A stretch of 64,000 nt of DNA from Hormiphora californensis (GCA_020137815.1 CM035354.1:6758001-6822000), one strand, 5' to 3'; shown: positions 36,301 to 57,184, counted from the stretch's first letter. Notes: generated from the sequence alone by a model not told the origin. Numbers and translations: made by a program.

Positions 36301-39300
36301 AATAGGAGTAGAGACAAATCTGAGGGCACTAAAGTGATCAGCGTCCTCGCATTAGTGGGGGTAGGTGGTGGAATTAAGTCTCTATCTCATCTGGTTAATT
36401 AGATAATTGGATAATTAGATATGCGCATAACCGTATTTTGGCTATATGGCTATAGCCACTTAGGAATGGTTTAGAGACGTTTCATCAGTGTCAATTTGTA
36501 GGCAAAGGCCAAGTTATGGGGGGTCGACGTCAGGCTTTTAAGCTCTATCTTCAACCGTTTAGCCGTTATTTGGCTTTAAAGGCACTCAAAATGAGCAAAA
36601 AACGGTAAAAAGCCCGATTTTGAGTACCTTTAAAGCCAAATAACGGCTAAACGGTTGAAGATAGAGCTTAAAAGTCCGACGTCGACCCCCCATAACTTGG
36701 CCTTTGCCTACAAATTGGCACCGATGAAATGTCTCTAAACCATTCCTAAGTGGCTATAGCCATATAGCCAAAATACGGTTATGCGCATATCTAATTATCC
36801 AATTATCTAATTAACCAGATGAGATAGAGACTTAATTCCACCACCTACCCCCACTAATGCGAGGACGCTGATCACTTTAGTGCCTCAGATTTGTCTCTAC
36901 TCCTATTTTAAGGGTACTTATGGTTTTGGCCTCAGGCTGAAAATACAGGTGTCAATTAAGGCCAATTATCGGACCTCCCCCATGGAGTTGGTTGGTAAAC
37001 TTTCGTTTGGTGGTAGGGGGGACCTATTAGTACCATTTAGTGAAGGAATTACATTGCCCCTATAAATTTTATGTTTTGTCAAATTTTATACACGATTTCG
37101 TCGGATTAATACCAGACTTTTACAATACTGATCTCTTGCCTCTTGGTTTGGAATTGTTAGTAGAAATACAGTTGCTATCTACTAACTCTCTGATTTTGCG
37201 ATGAGCTGTTGTTTATTTACAATCCATAATTTCAAATAGTACCTCAGAGAAATTGTATTTGCCTGTCGAGTTCTCCCTAAGGATCTATTCCCTATCAACC
37301 ACAGTGCAATCCATGATTTCAATAATTCCAATATTTTGCAGCATATGCTAGCATCATGAACGGCACTACTGAAATCTATGGAACATCAGCACAATCTATC
37401 CCTCTGGCAATCTACTGCTTCATCGCTACCTTTCTTGGTATCACTGGTAACGGACTCGTTCTGTACTCCTCACTACGCTACGATGCCATCAAAATGGATC
37501 AAGTGTCTCTGGATTTTGTTAGAAACCTAGCTCTTGCGGACATTCTCTATACCATTTGTGTTGCTTTACCCCAGTTTGTATCATATGCCACTCGCCGCTG
37601 GGTCCTGGGACCAGTGTTCTGTATTTTACAGGGTGAGATTGGCATGCTAGCCGGGGCTCTCAACACCCTCACCGTCTTTGCTATCTCGGCTTACCGACTC
37701 AAACTGGTCATCTCGCCCTTCCATCAGACTTCTCTCCGAGCAACCCGGATCCTGATTGGCTTCATTTGGTTGCTGGCGTTATCTCCCATAATCCTAGTTG
37801 AGTCCTACCAACTAGCAGTTACTTTCAACCCGTACAACGGGAGGTGTACCCTCGGTGGTGTTTACAAGCATGAAGAGGCTAAAGTACCCTTTATGATACT
37901 AGTCGGTATCATCGTATTTTTACCTCTGTTCGGGATCATCAGTATTAATTTCGTGCTGTTGGGGGTCGCTCTAAGGCTAAACCATGGATCTGGTAACAGC
38001 GGTCCAAGTCGTGGAATCAACTTTAAAGCTCTTCTGGTTATCCTGGCGTTGTCTGGTCTATTCATGTTAAGCTGGGGTCCCTATCTTGTTTACTCATTTG
38101 TTAGGATAAAGATTAAAGTGGTGTCTCATCATTTCGCCTTAGTTGCTTACAATTTCCTCCTCCTAAACACCTTTGGCAACCCCTTTCTCTACACTTTCAC
38201 CAACAAAAGATTCGGCCGGTATGTCCGCAGTTTGGTCTTTGGTTTGGTCGGGAAGCGGGAAGTCGTTAGCAGTCAGGAACCCAGCACCAGTATGGTTACT
38301 CAGAACCTCTCGAGAAAAAGGAGCAGTAGAACGACGAGCTTGTAAACATATTCTTAGTGATCAATAGAGCAAACTTTAAAAAACAAGCGAAAAGATTCTC
38401 CAATCTCCATTCTCCATCTAAAGAATTACATTGGGGAGAACATCAGATTCTTTTGAAAAGAATCTGATGTTCTCCCCAATGTAATTCTTTAGATGGAGAT
38501 TGTTCTTGCATTTTCCGTACAATGAAATCGAAATGGGGTAGTCGTACTCAAATGATATCAGACAATGTGTGGTTAACCCTTTGAGTCCCATAGGAAAAAT
38601 ATGTCCCAAAAGTTTGAAGTGCAACTTTTGAAGAGTGTCACTGGAATGATTTAATTTTTGAAGATTCTGTAGAAAAATGTGTTTTAACCTGACTAATTAT
38701 GTTAATTTTGACCGCCTCTAACTATGTATTACCTCATTCAGTTTGTCAACTTTTGGTGGAGCTATGATTGTCTCCCTAAAACTGACTAGGGGCGGAGATA
38801 CCTTGATATCGATCTTACTAAACCTGCGGGGGTATATAATTTAGCAGGGTTTATTCTCGATCATGTCATAATGCTATAATGCACATATACAGCAGGCATG
38901 TGGACAGGAGGGTGCGAGATTATCTAAGATAAGAGGGGTAAATATCTATGAGAATATGTTCTAACCTTGTTTTTAGGTCTTCTAAACACCGTTCTAGATG
39001 GACCTCCCCACTGGTACAGAGAACTAACTCTCCTGTTTCCAGAACACTGGTCTCCACACACGGGTCCGCCTGGTTCAGCAGCTTCATTCCTGTACACAGG
39101 GGGGATATAGTTGTTAGAATTCTACAGATGGGAAGGGAATATTGATTGGAGAGTGAAGACTGAAGCGTAGACATATATGATATGTTAAAATAATTCCACT
39201 TCTTCTTTTCCACTTTTTTTCTTCTTTTCCAGAAGAGAAAGAGGGGCGATGTAATATACGTTTGTGGTCGGATTTCTCTCGTCCGTGTTTTTGAGTGATT

Positions 39301-42300
39301 TGAAGTGGTAGCGACTGGAGTTTTGCCAAGAATTTAAGGCAGCTGGCCGGTTCCAACTGAAGTGCCATTGAAAAGTCACGTACCCATGATAAGACGGGGT
39401 ATTTCGATGGGATTGGAAGGTTCCACTGCCACCCTCAGGACGGGAGTTTGCCAGTGTGCCATCCCGTGGAAAGGTGGGCAAAACAGAGTGTCGGAAATTG
39501 TTGCACTTTTCTGGATAAGATCTTGTAGTCCCCCTACACCACAGATATTACCTGGAAGAGAGTGAGATAAAAAAAGACGGAGTGAATGAGAGCGAAAGAC
39601 ATTATTATATAGAGAGCGTGAGTGATAGCAAAACAGCGAATGATATTATGAGGAAGAATGCCCCATACCTGCGGGAATGGATGGTACCAGCTCTAGATCA
39701 TGGCCCATTAGGAGATACGTGGCACCCAGAGCTACCTTCCCCACGTGCACATTGACTCCATGGGTACTCCGCTCCTGAGTTGCTATCGTCCGGGGATCGT
39801 GTCGTGGACCCAGTACAAATATCTGATGAAAGTATGAGGAATAATAGAAGGAGGAATAATATTATCGTGTTGAATGACAGAGGAGAGCTAAATGAGATCC
39901 ACTAGTACTGCTTTTAGTTTTGGTAGGGACTATAGCAATGTATATAATGTGTTGATTTAGAATGTTCAGGGGTGGGCTTCGAGCACCATGGTTCATTATT
40001 GTGAAATGTGAATAAGCTTGCCGTGCTTATTATATTTCCTGCCCAACCCTGTGGGACAAATGCAATGGCCCACGATACGTTTATTGCTTCCTGTGTTCGT
40101 ACTACTATATTACATGTGCGGATTCTGCAATTAATAATTGTACCATGCACAGCAGAATATATAATATCTGCATATTATAAACTGAGCTCCATACCCCCTT
40201 CTATCTTTTTATCTTTCTCTCTCCCACTCTAGCTAGCACAATATACCCCCTTCTCTATCTCTATCTTTCTCTCTCCCACTCTAGCACAATATACCCGCCC
40301 GCTATCCAAACTTCCCTCATAGGTCTCAGTGACAACAGCTGCTCATACAACAAATAAAGTGTGTGAAAAATATTTGTGATATCATACGCGTCCTGTGCTA
40401 AGTGATGGGGATATATCCCATGTCGGATGTTGTCTGTCTCAGATGCAGTGTCGGTATACTAAATCTGGTTGTCTGTCTGTTTGTCTGCCTATGTCTCTCT
40501 GTCTGTCTCTCTGTCTGTCTATCTGTCTGTCTGTGTCTGTTTGGTGAGTGTATGACAGTGTGTACCTGCTTCCCGGGTTCAATACGACCACTGAACACTC
40601 TGCAAAACGCAACAAACACCTCCTTTTCCTTCTCTTTCGCCTCGTCTTCTTCTCCTTCTAAACGGGGACCCAACTCTGCAAAAACACATATATCTTATAG
40701 GATAAGTATAATGGAAGATATAAACAAGTCATCTTGATGATGCAGACGTATTATGGGGGAGGGGGGGGGGGGTTCAACCTAAAAATTTCCATTTCCATTT
40801 GCCAAAATCCGGGTATCGATGGAAATTTTTAGAAGTTTTTAGTACTAAAAATTTCTAAAAGTACCTAGACCGCACAGAATTACAATACCAACTGCACCGA
40901 GACCTCACTGATACTACTACGAGAATGTTGTGATACCCGGTATTCTCCCATGTAGACCCCGTGTAGACCCCATGTAGACCCCATGTAGACTCCGTGTAGA
41001 CCCCGTGTAGACCCCATGTAGACCCCATGTAGACCCCATGTTATAGACCCCATGTAATTTGGGTGTGACGGTGAATCTTACTTTTAGTATATAATGCGAA
41101 AAGGGGTGAAACTTGATCCACCCAAGCATGTTGAGTAGGCTGATCCCATCAGGAACTGCATTGTGTGTGTGATGTAATCCCCCTTATCCGATAATCGAGA
41201 GTGATAGATAGAGATAGATAGATAGTTAGAGATAGAGGGAGGGAAAGAGAGAGTTAGAGATAGAGGGAGATACTGAGAAATAGAGAGAGCAACGGGCCCT
41301 TTTCGGCTGAAGGCATCCTCTGGTAGTTGTAAATGGCACGCCAATCCTATTTTAGTACAATAAAGACAAGAAAATATCGATTTAAAACTATTTCAGCAAA
41401 GTACCAGCATATCATCTAATCTAACAACTCTCGCACAATAAGTTCCGATCATTGTTCGCAGGAGTGTCCTTAGGGGCGTCTATACACAGCGATACACAGC
41501 GATAGGACATGTTGTTGGGCTGCTATTCCCCTGCTGGGAGCCCTATTGTGTCGACAATGAAACGTGATTGCTTCAATATTTGGTCCACTGCAGACACACT
41601 GTTATTCGCCGCTTGCAGGGCACTCTATGGCACTTTCGTCTATTCCTGTCTATTCCTGTCTGGCGGTGCGCTCAGATGGGGTCGGCGGCATTCTACCAAA
41701 GCTAACAATCCATAGCTTCATTGGACGAGACCTACAGCTCCACATTATAATGTTAGCTACGGAGTTTAACACCACGCTGTGGTTATAGCTGTAGTTTGCC
41801 AGATGGAAGTACCAGAACCAACCATCCGTTGGACCATCAAAAATATTGAAAAATGGTGTCAAAATCTGGGAATTCGGTAGTTGACTGTTGACTAATGCCA
41901 CGACCCAGTAGAGAAGGATGGGGGTGTTAAAGAAAATGTAAATACCAGTTAGAACTAGGATGGTGGTTGTAGCTTGATTTCGAATCATATCACCGGAGGT
42001 TGACGCCGCCCTATTGGACCACAAGGTTACTATGGTTACCCCACAACTCACCGGCATCACTACCATGGGAACAATAAATTGGATAATTTCGGCTGCGCTC
42101 ATGTAAACTCCATACGAGTTGTTTACAGTGGTGCCGTTAGAATAGGATTCCACACATTCCGCAAACTGCCAGTTGTACTCAAATGTTGACCCGAACCAAA
42201 GAGGGATGGTGGACTGCACTAGTACCAGTACACTGTACACCACAATGGTTGCCATGACAACTCGAATTCTGGGTGGTTGGGAGAATGGTCGAACCAGGGA

Positions 42301-45300
42301 GTAGGTGCGGGTGATACTAAGGACTGCAATGTTAAAAATAGATGCCCGTACTAGCGATCTCCATCCGATTGTCCAGAGGGTACAGCCTAGACCGTCACTT
42401 AAAACAAAGGCTGGGCTTTTTGTTTTTCGGCCCCTCACGTAAATTATTGCTACAGGGATGTTCCACAAGATGAGCAAGAAGTCCGTGAGCCACATTGCAC
42501 GGTAAATACTGTAGCTGAGAGTCCGCTCCTTGGCAACACGCAATAGGAAGTAACCCTGAAGAGTGGCAGTGGGTAGACCCACGATACATGTGAAAAGAGC
42601 TAGGATTGTTAGTACTACCTCTCCGATCTTGATTCTCAGTGGGTCATCAGGGGGTGCCTTGGAGGCAAAGTTAGTCTGGACCCAATCAAAGTAGTCCATG
42701 CTGGAAACTTTGTGATACAAATGTTAAACGAATACAAGAGTTATATAACAAGCAAGCAAGGAACAGTTAGCCAGGAAAGAGATACTAAGCTAAGGGGAGA
42801 GCTTTATGAAGAACGGGTTCTATATATAATGCATTGTGATGAATATCTCTTTCTCTCTCTCTCCTTTTCTTTATCTTACCGGCTCTCTCACCGGGCCGAA
42901 CGCCCGGTGTGAGCTAAGCTCACTGAGCTTACACGAGCCCGAGCGACAGACAGCGTAGTATGGGATCTTTGTAATTTTAGTCATGTCTAGTCATATCGAC
43001 ACAGAAAAAACTTGCTCTTTCTCTTTGTGTCATATCAAGACATCAAGATTTAAAATTGAAGTAAGCACCACTAACGCTAAGAGCCCTAATACAGTATTCA
43101 TCCTCCTTTTCTCATTGTAATTCATATTCAAATACTGTGCAGAGGAAGAACTGCAACCCCAGTTGTCAACAGACCGTGCTTGGGGCGCACCCGGTGGGTA
43201 CGCTAGTTTCTAAAAAATATTTTTGAATTTCATTAATTTCCATTCAAAAGTATACAACATATGACAAAAACAACGGGCCAAACATCCAAACAATGGGATC
43301 TCTCCACTCCAAAACTCAACATCGATAACAACTTCACAACATTATCACCAAATACAAACAACATAGAAACATACAACCAGAACATGCAAATCATCAGAAA
43401 CGATAAAAAACAATACACTGCTATACAGATGGGTCGAAGGACGAAAACGGTAACACAGGAAGTGGCCTAACTATAGAAATGGAAAATGACAAAATAGAGG
43501 ACAAAACCAAACTACCAGAATTCTGCACAGTATTCCAGGCAGAGCTAATAGCTATTACTAGAGCAGCTGAGATCATGAATGAAAAAAGAATTACAGATAA
43601 AATAATATATATCTGGAGCGACAGCAAATCCTCCGTCGACGCACTCGCATCCATCAAGACCAAGACTAAAACAGTCAGTATAGCAATACAAACACTCAAC
43701 AAACTGGCAACAAACAATAAAGTTACAATCGCATGGATCAAAGCACACATAGGCATTCCAGGGAACGAGAGGGCAGACGAACTAGCAAAAGCAGCAACGA
43801 TCGATGGAAATACAAGATCTTGCCCACCACCATTCAGTCAGGTCATAAAAGAGCTCAAGATATGGACAACAAGAGAAACTATCAAAGAATTCGAAAACAG
43901 TGGTGGGAAACACACCAAGCGGTTACTCGCAGACACCCAAAATTCATATGAAACAAGGACGGAACAGTACATGATAACAGACACACAAACATACAACAGA
44001 ATAACAAAGCAAACGAAGGACCTTATGAAAACTCGACAAAGTATCAGAACAGCCACTCACATAATAACCCAGCATGGAGAAAACAACCACCATCTAGGCA
44101 AAATAGGAAAAACACAAAACGAATTATGCACATTATGCCAACTCGAGGAAGAAACGGTAGAACATATTATTTGCAAGTGTCCAGCGATAGCACAAAAAAG
44201 GGAAGAACTCTCAGGAAGTGCGTACCTCAGTGATATATATTCAACACTGAGAAACAACCCACTAAAAGAAGCAATCGACATAATGCTGTTGTTCCTAAAA
44301 CGAAAGAAATTAATCATAAACGACACAGAAGACTAGAGATCCAAACTACCAACATAACCATAACACACAAATTAAACAACAATCAAACAAAAATTAACAA
44401 ACACATACCTAGAAACCAGTACAACAAAATCAAAAGGACGGACCGCAATGTGTACAACGACATAGATGCACGCAATGCAGCGCATCCCCAAGACGACTGC
44501 TGCAACCCCCCTCTCACCTCCCCCGCAGCAGTCGCCTTTCCCCACCAGGGTTATCCCTCCCCATACCCCTTCCCATTACTAGTCGGCCCCACAAATGGGA
44601 TCTCCCGCCCCCTCATACCTCACGGCCATCATTAGCGGTGCTGGTATCACTAAGTGATTGGCCCTGTGCGTAGGGTCCCCAACAGGGGTTCACGCCCATG
44701 GCAACCGCTCTTATCAAATCAAATCAAATCAAATTCATCAAAAATTTCCAAAAATTTCCATTTTCCATAAATTTCCAAATAAAACTCTAAAAATTTCCAA
44801 CTTAAAATTTCCATTTACCAAAAAGTGGGTATCGATGGAAATTTTTAGGGTTGAACCCCTCCCCCCTTTATATTAACTTGAGTTAAAGTTATAACGCTAA
44901 ATTACCTTGAGTTAGTTCAGGGTTAAAATTAACACTCAGTTTCTGCTGATTTCGTAACCTCGCCGCGTCTCTCCTCCTCTCAATCTCAGCGTCGGTGAGT
45001 GGTCTGTGTTTGTTGCAGGATATGTGATCGGGTAGCACACTTATCATCTTGCTAACGTACACAATAACAGGGTCATCCTCACCCCCGCTACACGCCCTGA
45101 ACGCTGCAAGTTAATCAGTGTTAAGAGTGGTGTGGTTACTGGTGACGTCATAGCACTGTCTGGCGCCGCCGACCCGATCTGAGCGCACTTTGAGAATCAA
45201 ATTGGGGTATGGGCGCCGCCATACAGTCATAGCACGGGTCCCTTAGCAGTTAGCTACAGCAATTGCTGTGCGGGACGCAGCTGTGTGCGAGTATTTTTTG

Positions 45301-48300
45301 TTTGTTTAAAACTTGATTTATAAGTGTTTCCACCCAAAATAGTTCCACCCAATAAAACATATCGTAATGATGACGTCTAGTTAGATTTTGTAAAACCTTG
45401 TTTAACTTGTCACAATTGTAGTAATGATGACGTCATAATATACCTGATGTTAGAGCCTGTGTTTCCCGGGGTAATTGTTCGATACTAGTGACTCCGGAGC
45501 ACAGTAAACTGTTGATCTTCTCAGAGCTGAGGTCCAGAGGAGAGGGGAGAATCTCACATGCCATGTCTGCAGGGGAATTAGAAGAGAGTTCGAAGGGGGA
45601 TTAGTAGGGAATTAGATGGGGTAAATGGGAGGCCTCTAGGGGAGGGGGGGGGGTAGATGGAGCATTACAAGAAGGGGGTAGGAGCAGCGTTAGATTGGAG
45701 TTGGACATGATTTACAGGGGATTCGAGGGGAATTAGAACCATCTAACTGGCATTGGAGAGCTAGTCACCGTTGCTAAAAAGCATCAAGGAGTGTTTTTTT
45801 CGTTCGCACAGTTTTAACATTTAACTCCATTTACTGGGCGTAATTTATAAACGTCACTCAGTACACTCGTAAAGGGTAATTATGTGAACATTTAATGGCG
45901 TACTGAAAGTGTGATGTAATGCCACGGAGAGAGAGTTAGCGTAGCATTTCATTCAAGTGAAGTTACTGTATTTACCTAGAAGTGCGCTGGCAATGGGTAT
46001 CCAGGCATTAAAGACTGCGAACAAGTGAACCCTGTAGTCTGTGCTCCGGGCATCACGTGGTGCTATCTTTAGCTTTAGTGACGTCACTATCTGATCGATC
46101 TTATCGTTGTTCCTGAAGAAGTCAGGAATAAGGGAGTTGTATGAGGGGTTCCGTGTTAAAAAGTATAACGAGAATCGGACTGGTTTAAATGATCGAAATA
46201 GCTAAGATTCAATTTCTTCATACCTTTGTAATAATACAGCCTTATAAACATTCCAAATACTCTCCAGTATGAAGGTAACAAACAGCGGCCTCTTCCCCTT
46301 CTCATACGCTCCCTTCTGGATCTGTTTCGCTTTGGTATTCAGGTGGTAATCACCCCACAGGGTCTTCTGAAGTACATCCTTTCTGATTCCCATTTTGGAT
46401 TGGTAGAGCGATGCAAAGGTTGAAACCCTGAAACCCCATCCGTCTGAAGCGCTGGCAAACGCCACGTTGCCCTTTTCAGGGGAGAAGTAGAGGTTTGAGT
46501 CATCATTTTCTTCCAGATCCAGGCCACTTGACCAATCGTAATAAGCCTTCCCATCTGAAATGGGTATATAAAAAGTGAAATTCTGAATCAGACATTGGAA
46601 GATATTTATCAAGCTTTGATTATCCTCCAGTGGCAGCATCAGCTGTGCTGTCCCTGGGTGATCTGGGCAGGATACAAGTTTAGATACTATTATCATGACG
46701 TGAAACTAACCTTCATCAAACTTGTCCTCAGTAGGTTTTTGAGATGAGCCGCCAGTGGAGGAGGCAGGGGTAAAGCTGTTGTAGCCCTTTTCCATTACCT
46801 TACTGGAGTGCAACTCTCCCACTTTACTATTAACCTGAAGCGGCATAATGAATGATATTATATCGAGATCCAGTAAATAGCCAAATAGCATTAATTGCCC
46901 AGATTATAACCGAATGGAATTTGAGCAGAAGCAGTATAGACCTCCTGGTAAGTATAGCAGCTTAGTTTAAAATAACGAGGTAATGATGTAGACTCATCCT
47001 GGAGACAGTAAGAAAATGGGCCCATAATTAGATAATGGGGCCCTTAAATAGATAATGGGGCCCTTCTTAATTAGATAATGGGCTATGGACCCTAGGCCCA
47101 TAATACAATACTAGCCACTACCTTCATTACCTGTTCTAGGACCCTCTGAAGGTGCACGTAAGCCTCATCAGGAGATAGTTTCATCTCTGTAATGAGTCTA
47201 TCACACTTGTTTAGAATCAGGGTCGGTTTGATGTGCTCCGTCCACGCTTGTTGGAGAACTGTGACCGTCTGGGGGCAGACTCCCTGAAAATGTGTATGTG
47301 AGAAATTGAGAAGAACAATATATCACTTGATAAGTCCATGGAGTAGTACGTTGAGGAGGGAGAAAAGAAGAAGTGCGACATGCGGGCGAAAAGAAGGATA
47401 GTATTGTTTTGCGTGAACCTGATTACTGATGTGATTTCAGAGGCTAGACTTCACCACTGCATGAAACATCACACTACTATCCCACCACCACCTGGCTATT
47501 TATTCTAGGTCTTTTGCTCTTTTTTACCACGGACTACAATACGTGACGTGACGAATCTGTAGCCTGACTACAATACGTGACGAATCTGCAGCCTGATGTG
47601 CATTATTCTCGAATTTGTGATTGTATTGTGTTCAACATTATCTTTGTTTTCAACATTTTCTTTGATAATCGCTCAGCTCCGAATTCAACGGTCAACCTCA
47701 GGCTTTTTGAATCTTCAAAACCGTTCCCTAGTAAATGTTGACAACAGCAATAATAACGTCACTCTATGACTCATTTAAGCCTGCATTTAGCATGAGCGGT
47801 TTAAAGTGGATCGGGAATGCTACCTTTGACATCAAAAACCTTCCCGATGGTAACTGTTCCGTTTTTGGACTGTTTGAAGATGATATTTGCAATATCACTA
47901 CGGTCCGATGGATATGGTCTGGGACATTTCTAGTTGCACTTCTGTCATCCCTGGTTGGCAATGCTCTTATTTTCATGGCAATACAACAGCGCTCTATCCG
48001 AGTTTCCCGTGTAATGACAACTGTGATTCTGCATATTGCAATATCAGATGTTGCCCAGACACTACTTAGCATCCTCCCAATATTCATCACCGTAGCAACC
48101 GATAGATGGGTCTTTGGCAAGTATTTCTGTTTGTTTCAGGCGATTTTCCGGGATGCCCTAACCAATACAGGCACGTGTTTGGTATCCCTGCTTAACGCTA
48201 CTAAACTATTCTCCCTCCTCTTCCCACTCCGAGCTAAGACCCACTCTGGCAAACTAGGACACCTAACTTCAGGGCTAGTCTGGGTTTTGTTCTGTGGGGG

Positions 48301-49460
48301 CAGGTTGGTGTTCTATGTTTCGACCTCGATTGACACATTCGTGGAAGTTAATTTTCTACTCGACATGACTTGTGATGGTGTGGTTGTCCAGTTACTACCC
48401 TACAAAGTTCTCACATCACTCCACGCGGTGGGGCTACTGGTGATCCTTCTCACCACCCTGGGCGTGGTGGTTATAGCCCTGAGGAGAACGAGGGTCAACT
48501 GGCAGGGTATTGTAACAGTGGTGGCGGTATCAGGCCTGGCTACAATATCATACACCCCTGAGTTGTGGATTAAAATGAAAAACTTCGATGGGAATGAGCT
48601 GGAAATCTATGAAAATCAGAAAACGCGTTGGATCATTGCACACTTGGTAACTTATCTGAACAATATTGCAAACGCTCCGGTGTACTATTTTAGTATAGCG
48701 AGTTTTGGGGAGTTTGTCCGGCAGAAAGTAGAGAGATTGACTAAAGGTGGACCACAACAGCAGCAGCAGCAGCGGCTTGTTATGTTCTAACCCTCTTCTA
48801 CATTTGTAGAGCGTACGGAAAGAGGGTCCAGCAAGGCAACCAGCAGCAGTAGCAGACCAACAAATAATTGTCATACCTCAACAACATCCACGACAACGTA
48901 ACTTCCGTCGCAGAGCCTCACTGCAGTCGATACCTCTCCACTGAAGTCAACGTGACCAGGACTATCAATTAGGTTCAGTAGAAAATCTTCTCCACCTGTG
49001 GGGGAGACAATGAGTTTTGCTTCGCTATCAAAAGTAGACAAGACACATACCAGTACTTCTAAGCGCTTAGTAGGAGTAAAATGTTTCCAGAAAAAAAAAT
49101 GTGTGAGTGAGTTTGATGATGTCCATACCGTATCGATGATGAAGAGATATTGCGCTTGATTTCATTGTTATTCCACGAGCTTTTTCCTGTGTCAAATTAT
49201 CCAGATAACGCAGCTGAAATAGGAAACGAAGAGTTAGGTAATTTTAATTGAAATATAATTAGGTGTGATGTGACACCATTTAGCGAGTGTCATGATCAGT
49301 GAAGTACCTTTCCTGCGAGCCTTTGTGAAATGATTCCATTGCTGGCGATCAGGGAGTCTGCAATAGTTGTTTTCCCGTGATCCACATGTGCCAGAATACA
49401 GAGGTTTCTAATATTCTTGGTATTTTGCTGGAGAATCTTTAATCTACCATCTTCCGTCAT
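33308..49460 (-). CDS. EFL1: Elongation factor-like GTPase 1 (EFTUD1/Ria1), ~21 exons; introns 3, 9 and 14 host nested GPCR genes
   Basis: Exon 1 [51 protein letters not shown]; [12 protein letters not shown]; [24 protein letters not shown]; NKCDRL; [20 protein letters not shown]; [12 protein letters not shown]; GPLCEEPM; [11 protein letters not shown]; [12 protein letters not shown]; ends [10 protein letters not shown]. Confidence 0.95.
36132..37075. mobile_element. Fold-back palindrome, ~460-bp arms and ~24-bp loop, in EFL1 intron 14
   Basis: aacataaaatttataggggcaatgtaattccttcac ... gtgaaggaattacattgcccctataaattttatgtt; arms nearly identical; centre 36592-36617; termini degenerate, no clear TSD. 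Confidence 0.85.
37356..38345 (+). CDS. Rhodopsin-class 7TM GPCR (329 aa), intronless, antisense within EFL1 intron 14
   Basis: N-glycosylated N-terminus, GN in TM1, LALAD in TM2, [12 protein letters not shown] (DRY-equivalent), SWGPY, NPFLY. Confidence 0.9.
   Translation: MNGTTEIYGTSAQSIPLAIYCFIATFLGITGNGLVLYSSLRYDAIKMDQVSLDFVRNLALADILYTICVALPQFVSYATRRWVLGPVFCILQGEIGMLAGALNTLTVFAISAYRLKLVISPFHQTSLRATRILIGFIWLLALSPIILVESYQLAVTFNPYNGRCTLGGVYKHEEAKVPFMILVGIIVFLPLFGIISINFVLLGVALRLNHGSGNSGPSRGINFKALLVILALSGLFMLSWGPYLVYSFVRIKIKVVSHHFALVAYNFLLLNTFGNPFLYTFTNKRFGRYVRSLVFGLVGKREVVSSQEPSTSMVTQNLSRKRSSRTTSL
40947..41056. repeat. Tandem 11-bp repeat ccccatgtaga/ccccgtgtaga, ~9 copies
   Basis: Directly visible. 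Confidence 0.9.
41650..42699 (-). CDS. Divergent rhodopsin-class 7TM GPCR (~349 aa), intronless, same strand as host EFL1 (intron 9); ATG at 42699
   Basis: Seven hydrophobic segments; WLTD (TM2), ECL1 Cys, SITRTY (DRY position), ECL2 Cys, FNTP (TM6), [10 protein letters not shown] (TM7). Confidence 0.85.
   Translation of the reverse strand: MDYFDWVQTNFASKAPPDDPLRIKIGEVVLTILALFTCIVGLPTATLQGYFLLRVAKERTLSYSIYRAMWLTDFLLILWNIPVAIIYVRGRKTKSPAFVLSDGLGCTLWTIGWRSLVRASIFNIAVLSITRTYSLVRPFSQPPRIRVVMATIVVYSVLVLVQSTIPLWFGSTFEYNWQFAECVESYSNGTTVNNSYGVYMSAAEIIQFIVPMVVMPVSCGVTIVTLWSNRAASTSGDMIRNQATTTILVLTGIYIFFNTPILLYWVVALVNSQLPNSQILTPFFNIFDGPTDGWFWYFHLANYSYNHSVVLNSVANIIMWSCRSRPMKLWIVSFGRMPPTPSERTARQE
43245..44733 (+). 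mobile_element. 5'-truncated non-LTR retrotransposon (RNase H + CCHC knuckle; I/Loa/R1-group-like) with (CAAAT)n tail
   Basis: CYTDGSK...[10 protein letters not shown]...IWSDSKS...[19 protein letters not shown] (RNase H); [18 protein letters not shown]; frameshift in A-run ~43405; tail caaatcaaatcaaatcaaat at 44715-44734. Confidence 0.9.
47735..48790 (+). CDS. Rhodopsin-class 7TM GPCR (351 aa), intronless, antisense within EFL1 intron 3; C-terminal poly-Q
   Basis: GNAL (TM1), IAISD (TM2), [12 protein letters not shown] (TM6), [10 protein letters not shown] (TM7). Confidence 0.88.
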   Translation: MLTTAIITSLYDSFKPAFSMSGLKWIGNATFDIKNLPDGNCSVFGLFEDDICNITTVRWIWSGTFLVALLSSLVGNALIFMAIQQRSIRVSRVMTTVILHIAISDVAQTLLSILPIFITVATDRWVFGKYFCLFQAIFRDALTNTGTCLVSLLNATKLFSLLFPLRAKTHSGKLGHLTSGLVWVLFCGGRLVFYVSTSIDTFVEVNFLLDMTCDGVVVQLLPYKVLTSLHAVGLLVILLTTLGVVVIALRRTRVNWQGIVTVVAVSGLATISYTPELWIKMKNFDGNELEIYENQKTRWIIAHLVTYLNNIANAPVYYFSIASFGEFVRQKVERLTKGGPQQQQQQRLVMF

Positions 49461-51792: not shown

Positions 51793-54700
51793 ATGGCGAA
51801 GGTTATTAAAGGAACTGCGGTCGCTAAGAAGGTCCGAGAGGCCCTACGTGATGAAATTCTGGAAATAAAAGAAACCAAACCTGAATTTACACCCGGTCTA
51901 ACTGTCGTCCAGGTATAGCACCGCTTGTACTTAAATTAGTTTAACCAATTTAAATAAATATTTGCACTGGACATAAGTGTATTCATGTATTTAGTAAGTG
52001 TTTTCACTATATGCATCTCAAACAGAGTATTACATATTCAGGTTGGTGATAGGCCCGACAGTAATGTTTACATTGGCGCTAAGATCAAGGCGTGTAAGGA
52101 GATTGGAATCGAGGGGACCCATCTCAAGTTTCCACCTACTACTACAGAAGAGGAGCTGGTGGGAGAGATTGAGAGGCTGAACAACGATCCTAATGTCCAT
52201 GGAATCATCCTACAGGTATTGTGGTGTTATGTGTGGTTCTTCATTGCGATTTGGGGGATATGTTGGAGGGTCCGGGTCTTAAAATGGAACTAGGAGAAGG
52301 AATTCTAATTTCTAGTTTCTCCAGTGTCTTGAAACTCCTCCAAATATTTTTCATCTTTTGACAACAATTGCTATATATTGGGAGAGTTGCATTTGGCCCC
52401 TAGCTCACACCTACCTGATTTGATTTGATCAAATCAAACACCTACCTACTAATGACTAAAGTGAGGGTACTGGACTGTCGGGTAGCAGGTGGGTGATTTT
52501 AGAAGAATATAATATGAAATTGTGGTCAAGACTAGAGATAAGGGACAAGGGCCTAATTGAGAACAGAGCTACTGCAGAGACCTGGTTGAAAATGAAATCA
52601 TTTTATGCAAGGACTAGATTCATCTAGAACAAATCTCATTCCCTTTACACATCATTTCCCAAGGTACCTCTGGACTGTAACACTGGTATTGATGAGGCGC
52701 TAGCCACGAACGCCCTGGCCCCCTCTAAGGATGTGGACGGGTTGACTGATGTGAATGCTGGACGTTTGTCCCGGGGAGACCTTAAACGGTGTTTCACCCC
52801 CTGCACTCCATCAGGTTGGTGGTGATCGGTTTTACAATTTAACACTTGAAATAGATGCAGCAAAACAGTTCTGGGCCATTTCAAAATTCAATCCCATTCA
52901 ATGTGGATCCCGGGACACAGCCAATATATCGAGTATTCTTTCATTTTTGGTTAATTATCGGGCATTCCTGCGAGTTTTGACGTTCCCAGACGAGGCTGAG
53001 GAAGTCTGGGGCTTTTAAACATGACTCGAGAACTATCTAACCAGTTTCTAAGGAATCTTAATTCCACGAAACCACGAGTGGTATAACAGTTAACTATGTT
53101 GCCTTGTCTGCAGGTTGCATGGTGCTGATTGAGGAGGCTGGAGTCGATGTGAAGGGAAAGAATGTCTGTGTCGTGGGACGGAGCAAGATTGTGGGGGCAC
53201 CAATGCATGATTTGCTGCTGTGGGCACATGGCACGGTGACAACATGTCACTCCCGGACCCCCGATCTCGGTAAATTAGAGAAAGAACTTTTAGAGGAGGT
53301 ACGTGTTATTATAGCACGTGCCTTGAGCCAAGATTCGTGCTGTCAAGGTTCTTGACAGGTGGATAATAGCTCTTTAATTTCTTCTGGAAAGTTCTGTAAA
53401 TTTCTATGATTTAGGAGAGTAGTATAGAGACACAAAAAACAGAGCTAATTTGACATGTTGCTAAGAGATGGTTAGGAGATACAGTAGGTTTATGATTGAG
53501 AGATAGTAAAGAGATGAGAGATAGCTGCCACGTGCCCATTTCTTGTGCCAAAAATCATGCTAAGGAGGGTGAGAGAGAGGGGGAAAGAGAGAAAAAGAGA
53601 GATATACCAAAAATAACGCCTTTCTTTACCAAGAATATTGGAGCCTGCAAGACAATTTAACTCTATAACCCTATTTTTCTCACATGCCTTCTTAAACCAC
53701 TTCCTCTGGTAACGTCACCGCTAAAAAAGCAAAAATCAAAAGAAACACTTTTTAGCTCCTTTTCTTTAGTTTGATGGTCAACTTTAGCGAATATTTGCAG
53801 TTAGAAATTATAATCTAACTAAGAAATTTAAGCCAAATAATAAAACCACACTCTCTCAGTATTTTTCAGTGATCTTATATAACACATTCCCTCCACACCA
53901 GGATACCACATCAAGCAAGCAGACGTGGTTGTTGTGGCCGCTGGCAAGAAGGAACTGGTAAAGGGAGACATGATTAAACCGGGTGCGGTGGTTATCGATT
54001 GTGGTATCAACCCCGAACCCGATGCAACTAAGAAAAGTGGTGTGAAGTTGTGGGGAGATGTTGAGTACGGAGCTGCAAAGGAGGTGAGAGATATAACACT
54101 TTATTTTCGAACTCTATATTACACCTCTGTGCTAGCTAGACAAGGTTTCGAGGGGCTAGTATTACAACCATATTCACTTCACACAAAAAACACTTCCTCA
54201 CAGGAGGAAAACAGAAGATGTTTGAACAAATAGTATGACACTTATACACCGTATAATGGCTAAAAAGGTTTTTCACACAAACAGCTTAAAACAGCTTTAA
54301 CAGGTTACCTGGGTCACTAGGTCCATCACACAAAAACATATCAAAGTTTGGAGAGATACACCTTTCTACGAAATGTTCCCCGCCGATCAATGATCGGCGA
54401 TCATCACATAAAACTTCTCGTAAAATAGCTGTCCATTCCTTCTCGGCATAAATTATCATATATGGTCCAGCCGTCATCAAATATCAATTAGTGTTTAGGC
54501 AACAAACTGTCTAGTCCATGTGCTATTATAAAGTCAGTGTGTCTTTGTCAACAGATTGACCTCAACAGTGTGTCGTTGTCAACAGATTGACCTCAACAGT
54601 GTGTCGTTGTCAACAGATTGACCTCAACAGTGTGTCGTTGTCAACAGATTGACCTCATAAAAACTGTTGCAGTGGGTATCTTATGTCCGCTACTCAGCAC

Positions 54701-57184
54701 CCCTACTTGATGTTCAAAGTTTACTGCACTGTTCGTTACAATCATCCTCCCCTGGGCCAGCCTCCTTATTGTCTGGCGAATATTATGGTTCCGGGAGATG
54801 AGAATTAGGGGATTCAGTGCACTGGTAACCATGGGAACGAACCCAAAAATAATGTCATGAACGCTCACCTGCCATGGTGAAATGTACACAAGAAGGACAA
54901 AGAAAATGGAGCTGATATAGGGAATATTCATGAGTAGAATCGTGGTACAGCCTCGTCTGGTTTGTTTCTGATTTGGACATTCCTTGTTTGTGGTGTTTGC
55001 CTCCTTGTTATCCTTGCGTGGAAAGTAGAGGTAGATAAAGGTACTGAAGGAGAAAATAATGCCGGTGAGACAGTGCAGGGCATTCAACCAGATGCAGATA
55101 TTACAAAGGGTAAAGTAGAGACTTCTCTTTGTTCTGTCAATCTGTTTTAGAAGCAGGATGGGGATGTTATTGGCGCTCATGATCGAGGTATAAATGATGA
55201 AGTACACGACAATCCACCTCTTGGGGATGCGAATAAAGGGTGTTATAATCTTCTTAAACCGGGTAGCTGCAAGGAGGGTTGTTCCACACTGAGAGTAACA
55301 CCCCGTGGTACATGCAAATACCCGGGCTGTCTCGATGATGAACAAAGATCCAGACACCAGCTCGCCCTTCATCATGTACACAAAGTAGACCAAGGGTGCA
55401 AAGATACATGTCAGGGTGTCAGATATAGCGAGGGATTTAAAAAGAAATGTTGTAGCCCCGTTCTTCCTGCTCTGGTGGTTGTGTAGGATAAGGAGGGGGT
55501 TGAGGGAGGTTGAAACTAGGAAGCAGCACAGGAGAATTATACCCAGGGTATAGTTGATAAACATGTCGGTTGTGGTGGGGGTGTACTGGATGATGGTTAT
55601 GTTTTGTTTCTCCTCACTTCCCTTGTTGAATAGTTCTTCATCATCCACGTTCACCAGTTTCCAGAATATCAGCATTTTAGTCAGCTAGATCGGAGTTTAT
55701 ATGGGGTGGTGAATTCTTAGAACAATAAACTCACTTAGGAGATAGGGCTAGGATAGTAAAATCTAAAAGCAGTGAACTAACTGAGAAAGTAGGGATAGTA
55801 AAATCTAAATGCAATAAACTCACTGAAAAAAAATAGTATAGAGATGATAAAATCTAAAAACCATAAACTCACTTAGGAAATAGGGACAATAAGATCTAAA
55901 AGCATGCCATGTCACAGAATTCTTGGCACACTCCACATAATGCTCGCACTATATTATATCTGATAAGGACAAAGGGATGCCACACGTGCTTAGAACATTT
56001 ATACACGTGAACAGTCTATATTATAGCTGTTGCTGAAGGACAATGGAGAACGGATATGTTTATGTGTTTCCGAATAGACGAGAGTGTAATTATATTGACT
56101 CTAAAACATATATTTGGCTACATAGCGTTTCAAAAGATTTACTAAATAAAATATACTGTCAGACAAATAGAATGCTGTGAGTGCAAAGTATCATAGTGGC
56201 AGGTTACTAACAAGAATTATTGCATTATGTATTCATAATGCTGTGTTTCCCTGCCCTACCGTTTCACATGTCAATGACATTGTCACTGCCAACAGGATCA
56301 AGGCTTGGTCGATAATGTAATGTGAGATGCATACGATCTAGCTGTCAGTATACTTCTCACATAGCTTAGAGTTAGCTAACTCCCAATCACATGACACTTG
56401 CTAACCAGCTTTTGACATTCCAACTTAACTACTTATCTAACATCTCACACTCGACTCGCAAGATGAAAATGTGTATGTAACACACGAAACGCGCGGCAGA
56501 GCATTTCATGTTTTGTTGAGTGGCGCGCGCACACACGTCCGTCAAACTGTGTCAATGAGGTGTTTGATGAAGGAGTAGCTCGTCACTGTGTGCGCGGCTC
56601 TAGTTGCTACACCGTTGCCCTCGCAACGAAAGTGTGACCAAAAAATGTCCCTCTACCGATTAGTTAGTATACCAAAATGTCGTTTTCGAATTCTAACCCT
56701 GCTATGCCTTTTTACAAAGTAAAAAGGCATCCGGGTGAATGCCTTCGGCATTCACCCGGGCAGGGAAAAAATCTTTCTCTCACATGACGGGTGTACTGGC
56801 TAACCAGGGCTGTCTTGGGTGAATAACTCCCCACCATGATGTTATATCTTGACAGATAGGGGTATAGACAGCGGGGGGAAATGATACCAATGGTATGATA
56901 CAACTGCAATAGTATAATGTAAAAACAGATGTTGAGTCAAGGCGGTATACGGGTTGAATAAAGAGACTTCGTTTCGAGTGGCCCCTGTGCTGGTTTGGTA
57001 GTCCGAATGAATAACGACTTGTCGGTTTGAGCGGGTTGGAGACTGGAGAGATCACGATTACAAAAGTTGAAGTGTGTGGAGTTGCTGCGTGAGAGATTCT
57101 CAGCTCATCTGGGGGGACCATCTGCGGCAAAATATCTTTGTCCTTTGACTTGTATATAAGGTCTTTGTTCCCCACTCTCTTTAA

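Follow-up and report, generated by a model that had tools for sequence, protein, structure and literature searches.

In Pack-MULE-like capture, the internal sequence of the element is replaced and usually fragments are taken. To our knowledge, the route by which nested genes enter introns has not previously been shown. Nested intronic genes are unusually many in ctenophore genomes, where about half of them are TE-flanked, and 2,357 were counted in Hormiphora californensis (PMC8527503). Capture of host DNA bounded by a hairpin and CTAG is described for Helitrons from maize, for the bat elements Helibat and HelibatN3, the latter pair with the NUBPL promoter, and for Helraiser (PMC4778049). Helraiser requires its 5′ end (LTS), which is also retained on capture, whereas the 3′ end is dispensable; 5′-truncated Helitron copies were also noted in bat genomes (PMC4778049).

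The GPCR gene described here lies in an intron of EFL1, within a window of 64 kb that comprises the whole stretch of H. californensis DNA analysed. Both genes are encoded on the minus strand, and the GPCR is thus a parallel nested gene of the kind counted in PMC8527503. While that study reports counts only, the present case resolves the insertion boundaries and a likely vehicle, and, with boundaries defined to the base, it can be tested as an example of nested genes arising through relocation of DNA. The host gene was identified with a single exon (46202-46696) as search query, which matched EFTUD1 (5anb_K) with E=2e-41 compared with ~1e-13 for EF2. Its intron of 4,365 bp (about 40676-45040, minus strand) is flanked by exons in minus-strand ORFs, and its limits are predicted from splice motifs in the sequence rather than from RNA. 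The earlier note on this DNA had described the intron as almost filled by one segment; a single TIR-bounded transposon copy (40755-44868) occupies 94% of it, and the intron minus this composite measures ~250 bp. The proposed nesting also holds, with the TIR element inside the EFL1 intron, and both a gene-bearing cassette and a LINE inside the TIR element.

The cassette (40861-43206, plus strand) is an insert of 2,346 bp that combines repeat debris with one complete gene. The 11-bp tandem array CCCATGTAGAC recognized in the earlier note was confirmed at 40947-41056 (plus strand, 9.7 copies), and its sole weak genomic match is an unrelated intronic array with a 28-bp period. It is followed on the plus strand by a terminus fragment of a dispersed repeat family “B” (41073-41135; at least 30 copies of 85–95% identity, whose boundaries were compared) and by a GA-rich dispersed repeat of tandem structure that occurs at dozens of loci with ~80% identity (41197-41289). 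On the other side of the gene lie 84 of the 105 bp of a dispersed hairpin mini-repeat, which is 5′-truncated here (42880-42963, plus strand) and has sharp ends in 308 first-look candidates. Because this hairpin belongs to a separate 105-bp repeat with sharp ends of its own and does not form the end of any longer element, a short hidden Helitron at 42874-43206 was rejected. No family-level match exists in the genome for the cassette’s first 336 bp, and only for 41658-42697 do paralogues exist, the cassette ends having been searched separately. The genome contains the cassette just once: a second copy, a parent element or a donor is absent from the assembly, where the closest match does not exceed 87% identity.

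The complete GPCR ORF that had been reported within the insert is intact and intronless (41650-42699, minus strand; 349 aa plus stop). It belongs to the rhodopsin type, as the Pfam family 7tm_1 matches it with E=7e-15 and 55.6 bits against a curated cut-off of 30.5. The gene unit, comprising core promoter, 5′ UTR, CDS and 3′ UTR, extends over 41320-42862 on the minus strand and can be aligned to a paralogue on C3 (L029). This homology extends over the region of a TATA-like box in the core promoter (42822-42829, minus strand), which argues that the old GPCR duplication was DNA-based. Retroposition was rejected because the homology reaches beyond the transcript into the upstream TATA-box region and because the cassette has no tail.

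At its right edge, the cassette carries a Helitron-family 3′ terminus (RTS; 43162-43206, plus strand), a hairpin plus CTAG followed by T, which matches the nearest subfamily at 43 of 45 positions. The hairpin-CTAG end itself (43185-43206) is the sole such site in the 64-kb window and occurred in 0 of 100 shuffles. The identification of this motif as a Helitron 3′ end proved correct, as it is a true family terminus: the cassette’s 3′ end is common to at least 14 other copies ending in …GCGCTAG, 13 other copies end identically before T, and CTAG|T terminates 13/14 family copies. Canonical copies (n=8) are 303-331 bp long (~320 bp) with the head TCTCTATTATAA…, one of them having GC for the first TC. 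A flanking A precedes six of the eight, and the remaining two adjoin the 3′ end of an upstream copy. With two 3′ hairpins, no target-site duplication (TSD) and head-to-tail arrays, the family that supplied the cassette’s 3′ end is a bona fide Helitron. The enzyme RepHel is also encoded in the genome by many long ORFs, with 22 matches to Helitron_like_N, at least 15 of which lie in open frames of 1,000-3,500 aa.

The right edge of the cassette is the last base of this terminus, which makes rolling-circle machinery the most likely vehicle. Only ~15–20 such termini exist in 110.7 Mb, and by our own estimate the chance of an insertion boundary meeting a Helitron terminus to the base is ~1e-6. The mosaic of a host gene and repeat fragments, as known from gene-carrying Helitrons, argues for the same vehicle, and so do family members reduced to the RTS: 6/14 copies consist of the 3′ end only, two being 5′-truncated and four sharing just 42-100 bp. 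On the other hand, the family’s 5′ end (TCTCTATTATAA…) does not occur in the window at up to three mismatches, and the cassette starts with GTACC, i.e. with GT rather than TC. Together with the unmatched first 336 bp, this contradicts the idea of a complete Helitron. The cassette retains 45 bp of a ~100-bp conserved Helitron 3′ region, and its hairpin, perfect in the family consensus, contains one mismatch, and its fold is not more stable than that of shuffled sequences. The missing LTS, the short 3′ region, the mismatched hairpin and the lack of a second copy or donor all count against a Helitron vehicle, and with the head missing the vehicle is likely but unproven. The earlier proposal that the receptor arrived as mobile cargo after the TIR element, then described as a MITE, therefore stands as far as insertion into a TIR transposon is concerned, whereas the Helitron part has to be weakened: a Helitron was probably the vehicle, but in a non-canonical way and without its head.

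The cassette resembles known Helitron captures in that host DNA is bounded by a hairpin and CTAG, in its position between A and T without a required TSD and in its mosaic content. The 3′-end-only copies and head-to-tail arrays of its Helitron family fit this likeness. Yet known captures keep the LTS and contain mostly gene fragments, whereas the single-copy cassette has no LTS and carries a whole gene with its promoter. With respect to Helraiser the pattern is opposite, since the LTS is kept there and only the 3′ end is kept here. The 5′-truncated Helitrons of bats are similar in retaining only the 3′ part, as do two clear 5′-truncated copies of the cassette’s own family, but a full-length GPCR-carrying parent is not found in the ctenophore genome. 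The composite also shares with Pack-MULE-like TIR elements the presence of foreign, gene-bearing DNA between intact TIRs. It differs from them by a clean insertion into the host element at the cassette site and by a transposon terminus that belongs to the insert itself.

Among the alternatives, the first assumes that the filling occurred in situ. A canonical ~320-bp Helitron would first have inserted at A|T in the array. Its 5′ end would later have been broken, e.g. where RepHel nicked the LTS and then aborted, and the repair would have copied in 2.3 kb of ectopic sequence with the GPCR, leaving only the last 45 bp of the Helitron in place. Canonical elements are of the right size for this, and such a repair would account for the exact 3′ junction, for the equally exact 5′ junction with the host element and for the missing LTS. 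It would also account for the short filler-like sequence GTACCTAG at 40861-40868 (plus strand), which is a near-copy of the cassette’s own last 9 bp and includes the A variant that is private to the cassette in comparison with 13 other 3′ ends. This sequence is possibly templated filler. Copying from a template, however, should leave a donor, and nothing above 87% identity exists in the genome. Moreover, no trace of a canonical element is left in the 300 bp that precede the 45-bp end. We consider this in situ repair quite unlikely.

A second alternative does without Helitrons and turns on the 9-mer tttctaaaa, which is present on both sides of the cassette (40852-40860 and 43207-43215). A linear or circular fragment that by chance ended at a Helitron remnant could have been taken up at a staggered break, with the 9-mer as a 9-bp target duplication. 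The identical 9-mers, the non-canonical 5′ end and the single-copy status would all agree with such an event. The two 9-mers, however, correspond to consecutive repeats in the host element’s 10-bp array, which yields them without any duplication, and the unit count (four before the ATTAATTTCC unit) agrees with no duplication as well. Hence the flanking motif noted earlier is real but probably not a feature of the insertion; from the sequence, the pair is better explained as neighbouring array units than as a TSD, although the array also permits a 9-bp TSD reading. Since this alternative additionally leaves the base-exact meeting with the Helitron terminus unexplained, we regard it as very unlikely. 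What is solid is the insertion of the cassette into a transposon: host-element sequence continues uninterrupted across it, from one 10-bp unit to the next and with no loss, and this continuity on both sides indicates a simple insertion at a point flanked by A and T. The nesting inside the TIR element, combined with a cassette edge at a Helitron terminus, thus indicates that the GPCR came by DNA insertion into a transposon.

The element that received the cassette is a non-autonomous TIR DNA transposon with both TIRs intact and many dispersed copies. Its inverted termini, already noticed as bounding the segment, comprise 33 nt with 85% complementarity (40760-40792 and 44835-44867). The left arm (40755-40860, plus strand), with a G-run TIR and the start of the 10-bp array, matches more than 40 scored copies at 98–100% identity; the left array continues at 43207-43243 (plus strand) in alignment with family copies, and the right arm with the C-run TIR follows at 44733-44868 (plus strand), as placed by the TIR pair and the family alignment. 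Each arm has more than 100 genomic matches. The earlier note had reconstructed a ~270-bp MITE (281 bp when rejoined) and had expected uninterrupted copies throughout the genome, but no such family exists: intact copies measure 875-1,259 bp (n=8) with a unique core of ~450 bp, and no genomic copy has 54-244 bp between its termini. For this search, in which the control worked, the arms served as separate queries, and the middle piece of 37–39 bp was left out as it falls below the search minimum of 60 bases.

Considering that both TIRs are intact and that multi-kb inserts also occur in other members of the family, the cassette, perhaps together with the LINE, might have been loaded elsewhere; the TIRs might then have carried the 4.1-kb composite, with the GPCR as cargo, into the EFL1 intron. 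Target-site duplications argue otherwise. All eight other copies inspected are flanked by direct repeats, with a perfect 6-bp TSD in six of them and 5 bp certain in two, where the last base merges into the G/C run, whereas the copy in the EFL1 intron has no 6-bp TSD (flanks TATTAT vs TTTATA). The composite has no second copy either, and no autonomous partner was found, as the two long copies tried as candidates contain nested inserts and no transposase. Transposition of the loaded composite is therefore an improbable explanation. Less credible still is a native GPCR between two independent TIR-element insertions, or an assembly chimera: outer flanks that form no TSD are what ends from different insertions would give, but the two arms break at one consensus point, in adjacent array units and in the same orientation, the cassette stops at a transposon terminus, and the right junctions are spanned by a short-read contig. 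This contig, from the source individual, crosses 42640-43273 with one difference and covers the junctions between cassette, host element and LINE. In a second individual, the unique right part of the cassette is present and identical at 303/304 positions.

The second insert in the TIR element is a 5′-truncated non-LTR retrotransposon (LINE) at 43244-44732 (plus strand), which the earlier note had recognized as splitting the element and had placed at ~43245. It contains an ORF with RNase H and zf-RVT domains (43479-44336) and ends in an ATCAA-repeat tail, the RT domain itself lying upstream of the truncation point. Its relatives form a nested series with a common 3′ end and 91–96% identity, and 40 copies stop at the same 3′ position with the ATCAA-repeat tail. 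By these RT-associated domains and the series of 5′-truncated copies, the element is a non-LTR retrotransposon. At the LINE site, ~0.5 kb of TIR core plus the right array are missing in comparison with two family copies (L007, L011), and the EFL1-intron copy has thus lost its core at this position.

Returning to a Helitron as the probable vehicle, we propose the following course of events. An EFL1 intron of ~250 bp would first have gained one non-autonomous TIR transposon of ~1 kb, and later two insertions would have occurred in the AT-rich 10-bp arrays of this copy. The first would have brought a genomic piece of 2.35 kb, with a promoter-bearing intronless GPCR and repeat debris, between A and T. 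Helitron rolling-circle machinery, presumably RepHel, may have cut at the terminator (RTS) and thereby created the right edge of the cassette. The 5′ side could derive from a 5′-truncated derivative of a gene-carrying Helitron, or end joining could have closed an LTS-less end, perhaps adding 8 bp of filler for which the tip of the RTS served as template. In the second insertion, the 5′-truncated LINE would have replaced the core of the TIR element. The locus points to Helitron ends being used in a non-canonical way, without an LTS. In a tentative and rather unlikely specific version, the terminator by itself, in the absence of a canonical 5′ end, was enough to bound and deliver an entire host gene with its promoter. 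If true, such RTS-anchored capture would be the opposite of the LTS-anchored read-through of Helraiser and would have made a same-strand nested gene out of a GPCR that formerly stood free in a ctenophore genome; if recurrent, it would explain in concrete terms how some of the ~1,100 TE-flanked nested genes of this genome arose.

The suggestion that Helitrons explain both the nesting of GPCRs and the expansion of their family was not borne out. Of five GPCR paralogues, four are intact and the one on C3 is frameshifted; the nearest have dS≥0.2, and no end of a Helitron or of the TIR element lies within 1.5 kb of any of the five. A neighbouring nested GPCR has no such flanks. No other copy with both cassette boundaries or with a GPCR was found when the cassette ends were searched as the earlier note had advised, and 0/14 loci carrying the 3′ end encode a GPCR. 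The C3 paralogue was rejected as donor, being a frameshifted pseudogene with dS 0.24, no closer than the others and free of Helitron or TIR-element ends. Paralogues at dS≥0.2 and with no such ends nearby point to relocation and not to family expansion, and the outcome would be an old GPCR gene moved into an intron rather than a new duplicate. The case thus gives no support for Helitron-driven expansion of the GPCR family. Compared with its intact paralogues, the GPCR shows dN/dS of 0.33-0.65, and its private amino-acid changes are fewer than those of the pseudogene, a difference that is significant with one of three outgroups. In one putative RNA run, 0 contigs fell on the GPCR. A metagenome scan for the orthologous EFL1 locus in relatives returned nothing, and a protein database search for relatives yielded only two EukProt matches, one of which agrees with another paralogue at 94% identity. 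Read contigs of another organism, termed B, include GPCR sequences of ~90–95% identity, closer than every paralogue within the genome; read contigs were too short to reach across the junctions. An iteron link based on TAGAC was rejected, as alignments of the cassette’s 5′ region with two longer Helitron-family variants (L052, L056) were not above shuffled controls. These two variants are rich in GTCTA/TAGAC iterons, and TAGAC occurs both at the start of the cassette and in its 11-bp array.

A complete GPCR gene has been inserted into a transposon within an intron of EFL1; the window occupies C5:6758001-6822000 of the genome. One exon of this minus-strand host gene matches EFTUD1 with E=2e-41 and EF2 with about 1e-13, additional EFL1 exons are legible in the flanking sequence, and the splice motifs read there give an intron extent of about 40676-45040. 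A composite bounded by terminal inverted repeats (TIRs; 40755-44868) occupies 94% of the intron, which therefore measured about 250 bp before insertion. The composite holds the 2,346-bp cassette (40861-43206) with the 7tm_1 GPCR reading frame (41650-42699, minus strand) and a 5'-truncated non-LTR element (LINE; 43244-44732) with an RNase H/zf-RVT reading frame and an ATCAA-repeat tail, belonging to a nested series of 40 copies with a common 3' end and 91-96% identity. Three DNA runs give a very high-copy repeat of ~35 bp just outside the intron (45156-45189) a summed contig depth >30,000, and loose ends are numerous at either edge.

The earlier note proposed that the receptor entered as mobile cargo. 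The insertion is solid; for the vehicle, we hold with moderate confidence that a Helitron-type event with a non-canonical or degraded 5' end is most likely. The final 45 bp of the cassette match 14 other genomic loci, and 13 of these have the identical end, hairpin-CTAG and then T, which bears out the reading of this motif as a Helitron 3' end. Eight of the 14 are canonical elements of 303-331 bp which start with a TCTCTATTATAA... head (in one copy GC replaces its first TC), carry two 3' hairpins and are often arranged head-to-tail. A flanking A precedes six of them, the other two abut the 3' end of an upstream copy, and no target site duplication (TSD) was found at the canonical copies. A 5' end at the expected distance is missing in the remaining six (two are 5'-truncated, four have only 42-100 bp in common). 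At least 15 RepHel-type long open frames are present in the genome. The family is a genuine Helitron and the right edge of the cassette is its terminus to the exact base; with about 15-20 termini in 110.7 Mb, a chance match with an insertion boundary is estimated at the order of 1e-6. At L055, L059 and L061 the head-to-tail junctions are exact, TCTC directly following CTAG, and a deletion junction at L056 connects a 3' hairpin with position ~17 in the 5' end of the following copy. In L052 and L056, longer variants of the family, about 25 GCGTCTATAAT-type iterons precede the conserved 3' end, in L056 about 300-1000 bp upstream of it; L052 has inverted TAGAC motifs further 5'.

On the left side the picture differs: the 64-kb window contains no 5' end of the family, and the cassette starts with GTACC. 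Helraiser requires its 5' end but can dispense with its 3' end (PMC4778049), whereas the cassette keeps the 3' end without the 5' end. The first 8 bp (GTACCTAG) nearly repeat the final 9 bp (GTACGCTAG), both having an A that is not in the other 13 copies, and could possibly be filler copied from that tip when the 5' junction was sealed by end joining. Of two less likely rivals, in-situ filler capture would account for this near-repeat and for the exact right edge, and capture of a non-Helitron fragment would suit the missing 5' end but leave the base-exact right edge unexplained. No other genomic copy with both cassette ends, or with a GPCR, was found. At the insertion point, copies of the host element read ...AAAAATTTCC AAAAATTTCT AAAAATTTCC..., and by this comparison the 9-mers flanking the cassette (tttctaaaa) are most simply adjacent units of the host element's array. 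A reading without duplication gives four units before the ATTAATTTCC unit, as usual in the family, with insertion between A and T; a 9-bp TSD is possible but would not be needed to explain the 9-mers.

Arrival of the GPCR as cargo of the TIR element is a less favoured alternative; the cassette does lie between the element's termini, and it ends in the terminus of another family. The inverted termini (33 nt) are real, as the earlier note had seen, and each arm has >100 genomic matches. All eight intact copies (875-1,259 bp) combine G-run/C-run TIRs with subterminal arrays of a 10-bp unit (AAAATTTCYA), enclose a unique core of about 450 bp and lie between direct repeats; the TSD is a perfect 6 bp in six, and in the other two 5 bp are certain where its final base runs into the G/C run. 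The supposed ~270-bp MITE family was not recovered: no family copies with 54-244 bp between termini exist in the genome (a control search works), and the rejoined form is thus a deletion derivative. In the window copy the core is missing precisely at the LINE position and the flanks do not match (TATTAT vs TTTATA). Both of its homopolymer tips (40755-40772, 44851-44868) have symmetric A/T interruptions, G5-A-G12 and C4-T-C6, and it may have arisen by recombination between two copies. Two independent copies of the TIR element, an unlikely rival, would likewise have unmatched flanks. The arms diverge 0-5% from the family consensus. Host-element copies at L073 (C2:3661400-3666360) and L071 (C13:4379500-4384300) have reached 4.7-4.9 kb because other sequences are nested in them, among these an RT-bearing LINE from a different family; given such multi-kb inserts, the AT-rich arrays are frequent landing sites. 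A second G-run-TIR family with (AGCTTTTTTT)-type arrays (L051:2340-2930) has a parallel architecture.

In whole-genome searches only the GPCR coding region of the cassette has paralogues, at five loci with 81-87% nucleotide identity. Outside it the cassette is a mosaic of 86 unique bp, an 11-bp array, a terminus fragment of another repeat family (41073-41135; TATATAATGCGAAAAGGGG..., at least 30 copies), a dispersed GA-rich repeat, 84 bp (42880-42963) of a 105-bp dispersed hairpin mini-repeat, about 200 bp with two weak matches (72-78%) and nothing else in the genome, and the final 45 bp of Helitron 3' end. At L044-L048 the terminus of the 41073-41135 family leads into GATCAGATCACCCC-type tandem arrays. 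The mini-repeat has a perfect ~13-bp hairpin and sharp ends, and a first look gives about 300 genomic candidates; one copy (L051:1479-1584) sits between GTCTAGAC iterons. The GPCR gene unit (41320-42862) can be aligned, TATA-like promoter region included, to a frameshifted paralogue on C3. Because promoter sequence is common to both, the old GPCR duplication was DNA-based and retroposition is ruled out. This paralogue (L029, C3:7341935-7342956), at 87% the highest in nucleotide identity, is now a pseudogene carrying numerous frameshifting indels, and it keeps promoter and UTR homology.

The cassette GPCR has dS values of 0.21-0.50 against all paralogues, and no donor copy was found in the genome (110.7 Mb in 45 contigs); the receptor is accordingly an old gene that was moved, or whose donor has disappeared, and not a fresh duplicate. 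Against the four intact paralogues dN/dS is 0.33-0.65. In the one putative RNA run, no contigs fall on the GPCR. Read contigs of a second individual match the unique right part of the cassette (303/304 identity). GPCR contigs of a related species are 90-95% identical, exceeding every in-genome paralogue, which indicates that an orthologue exists there.

The idea that this mechanism generally explains GPCR nesting and family expansion is not supported: no Helitron or TIR-element ends lie within 1.5 kb of the five paralogues, nor at the putative nested GPCR next door (47735-48790); termini of the cassette-end and host families are found nowhere else in the window. Three more intronless reading frames of 329-351 aa (37356-38345, 47735-48790 and 54641-55675) are located in introns of EFL1 and a neighbouring gene. 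The second has no Pfam match; for 7tm_1, 54641-55675 scores below and 37356-38345 above the cut-off.
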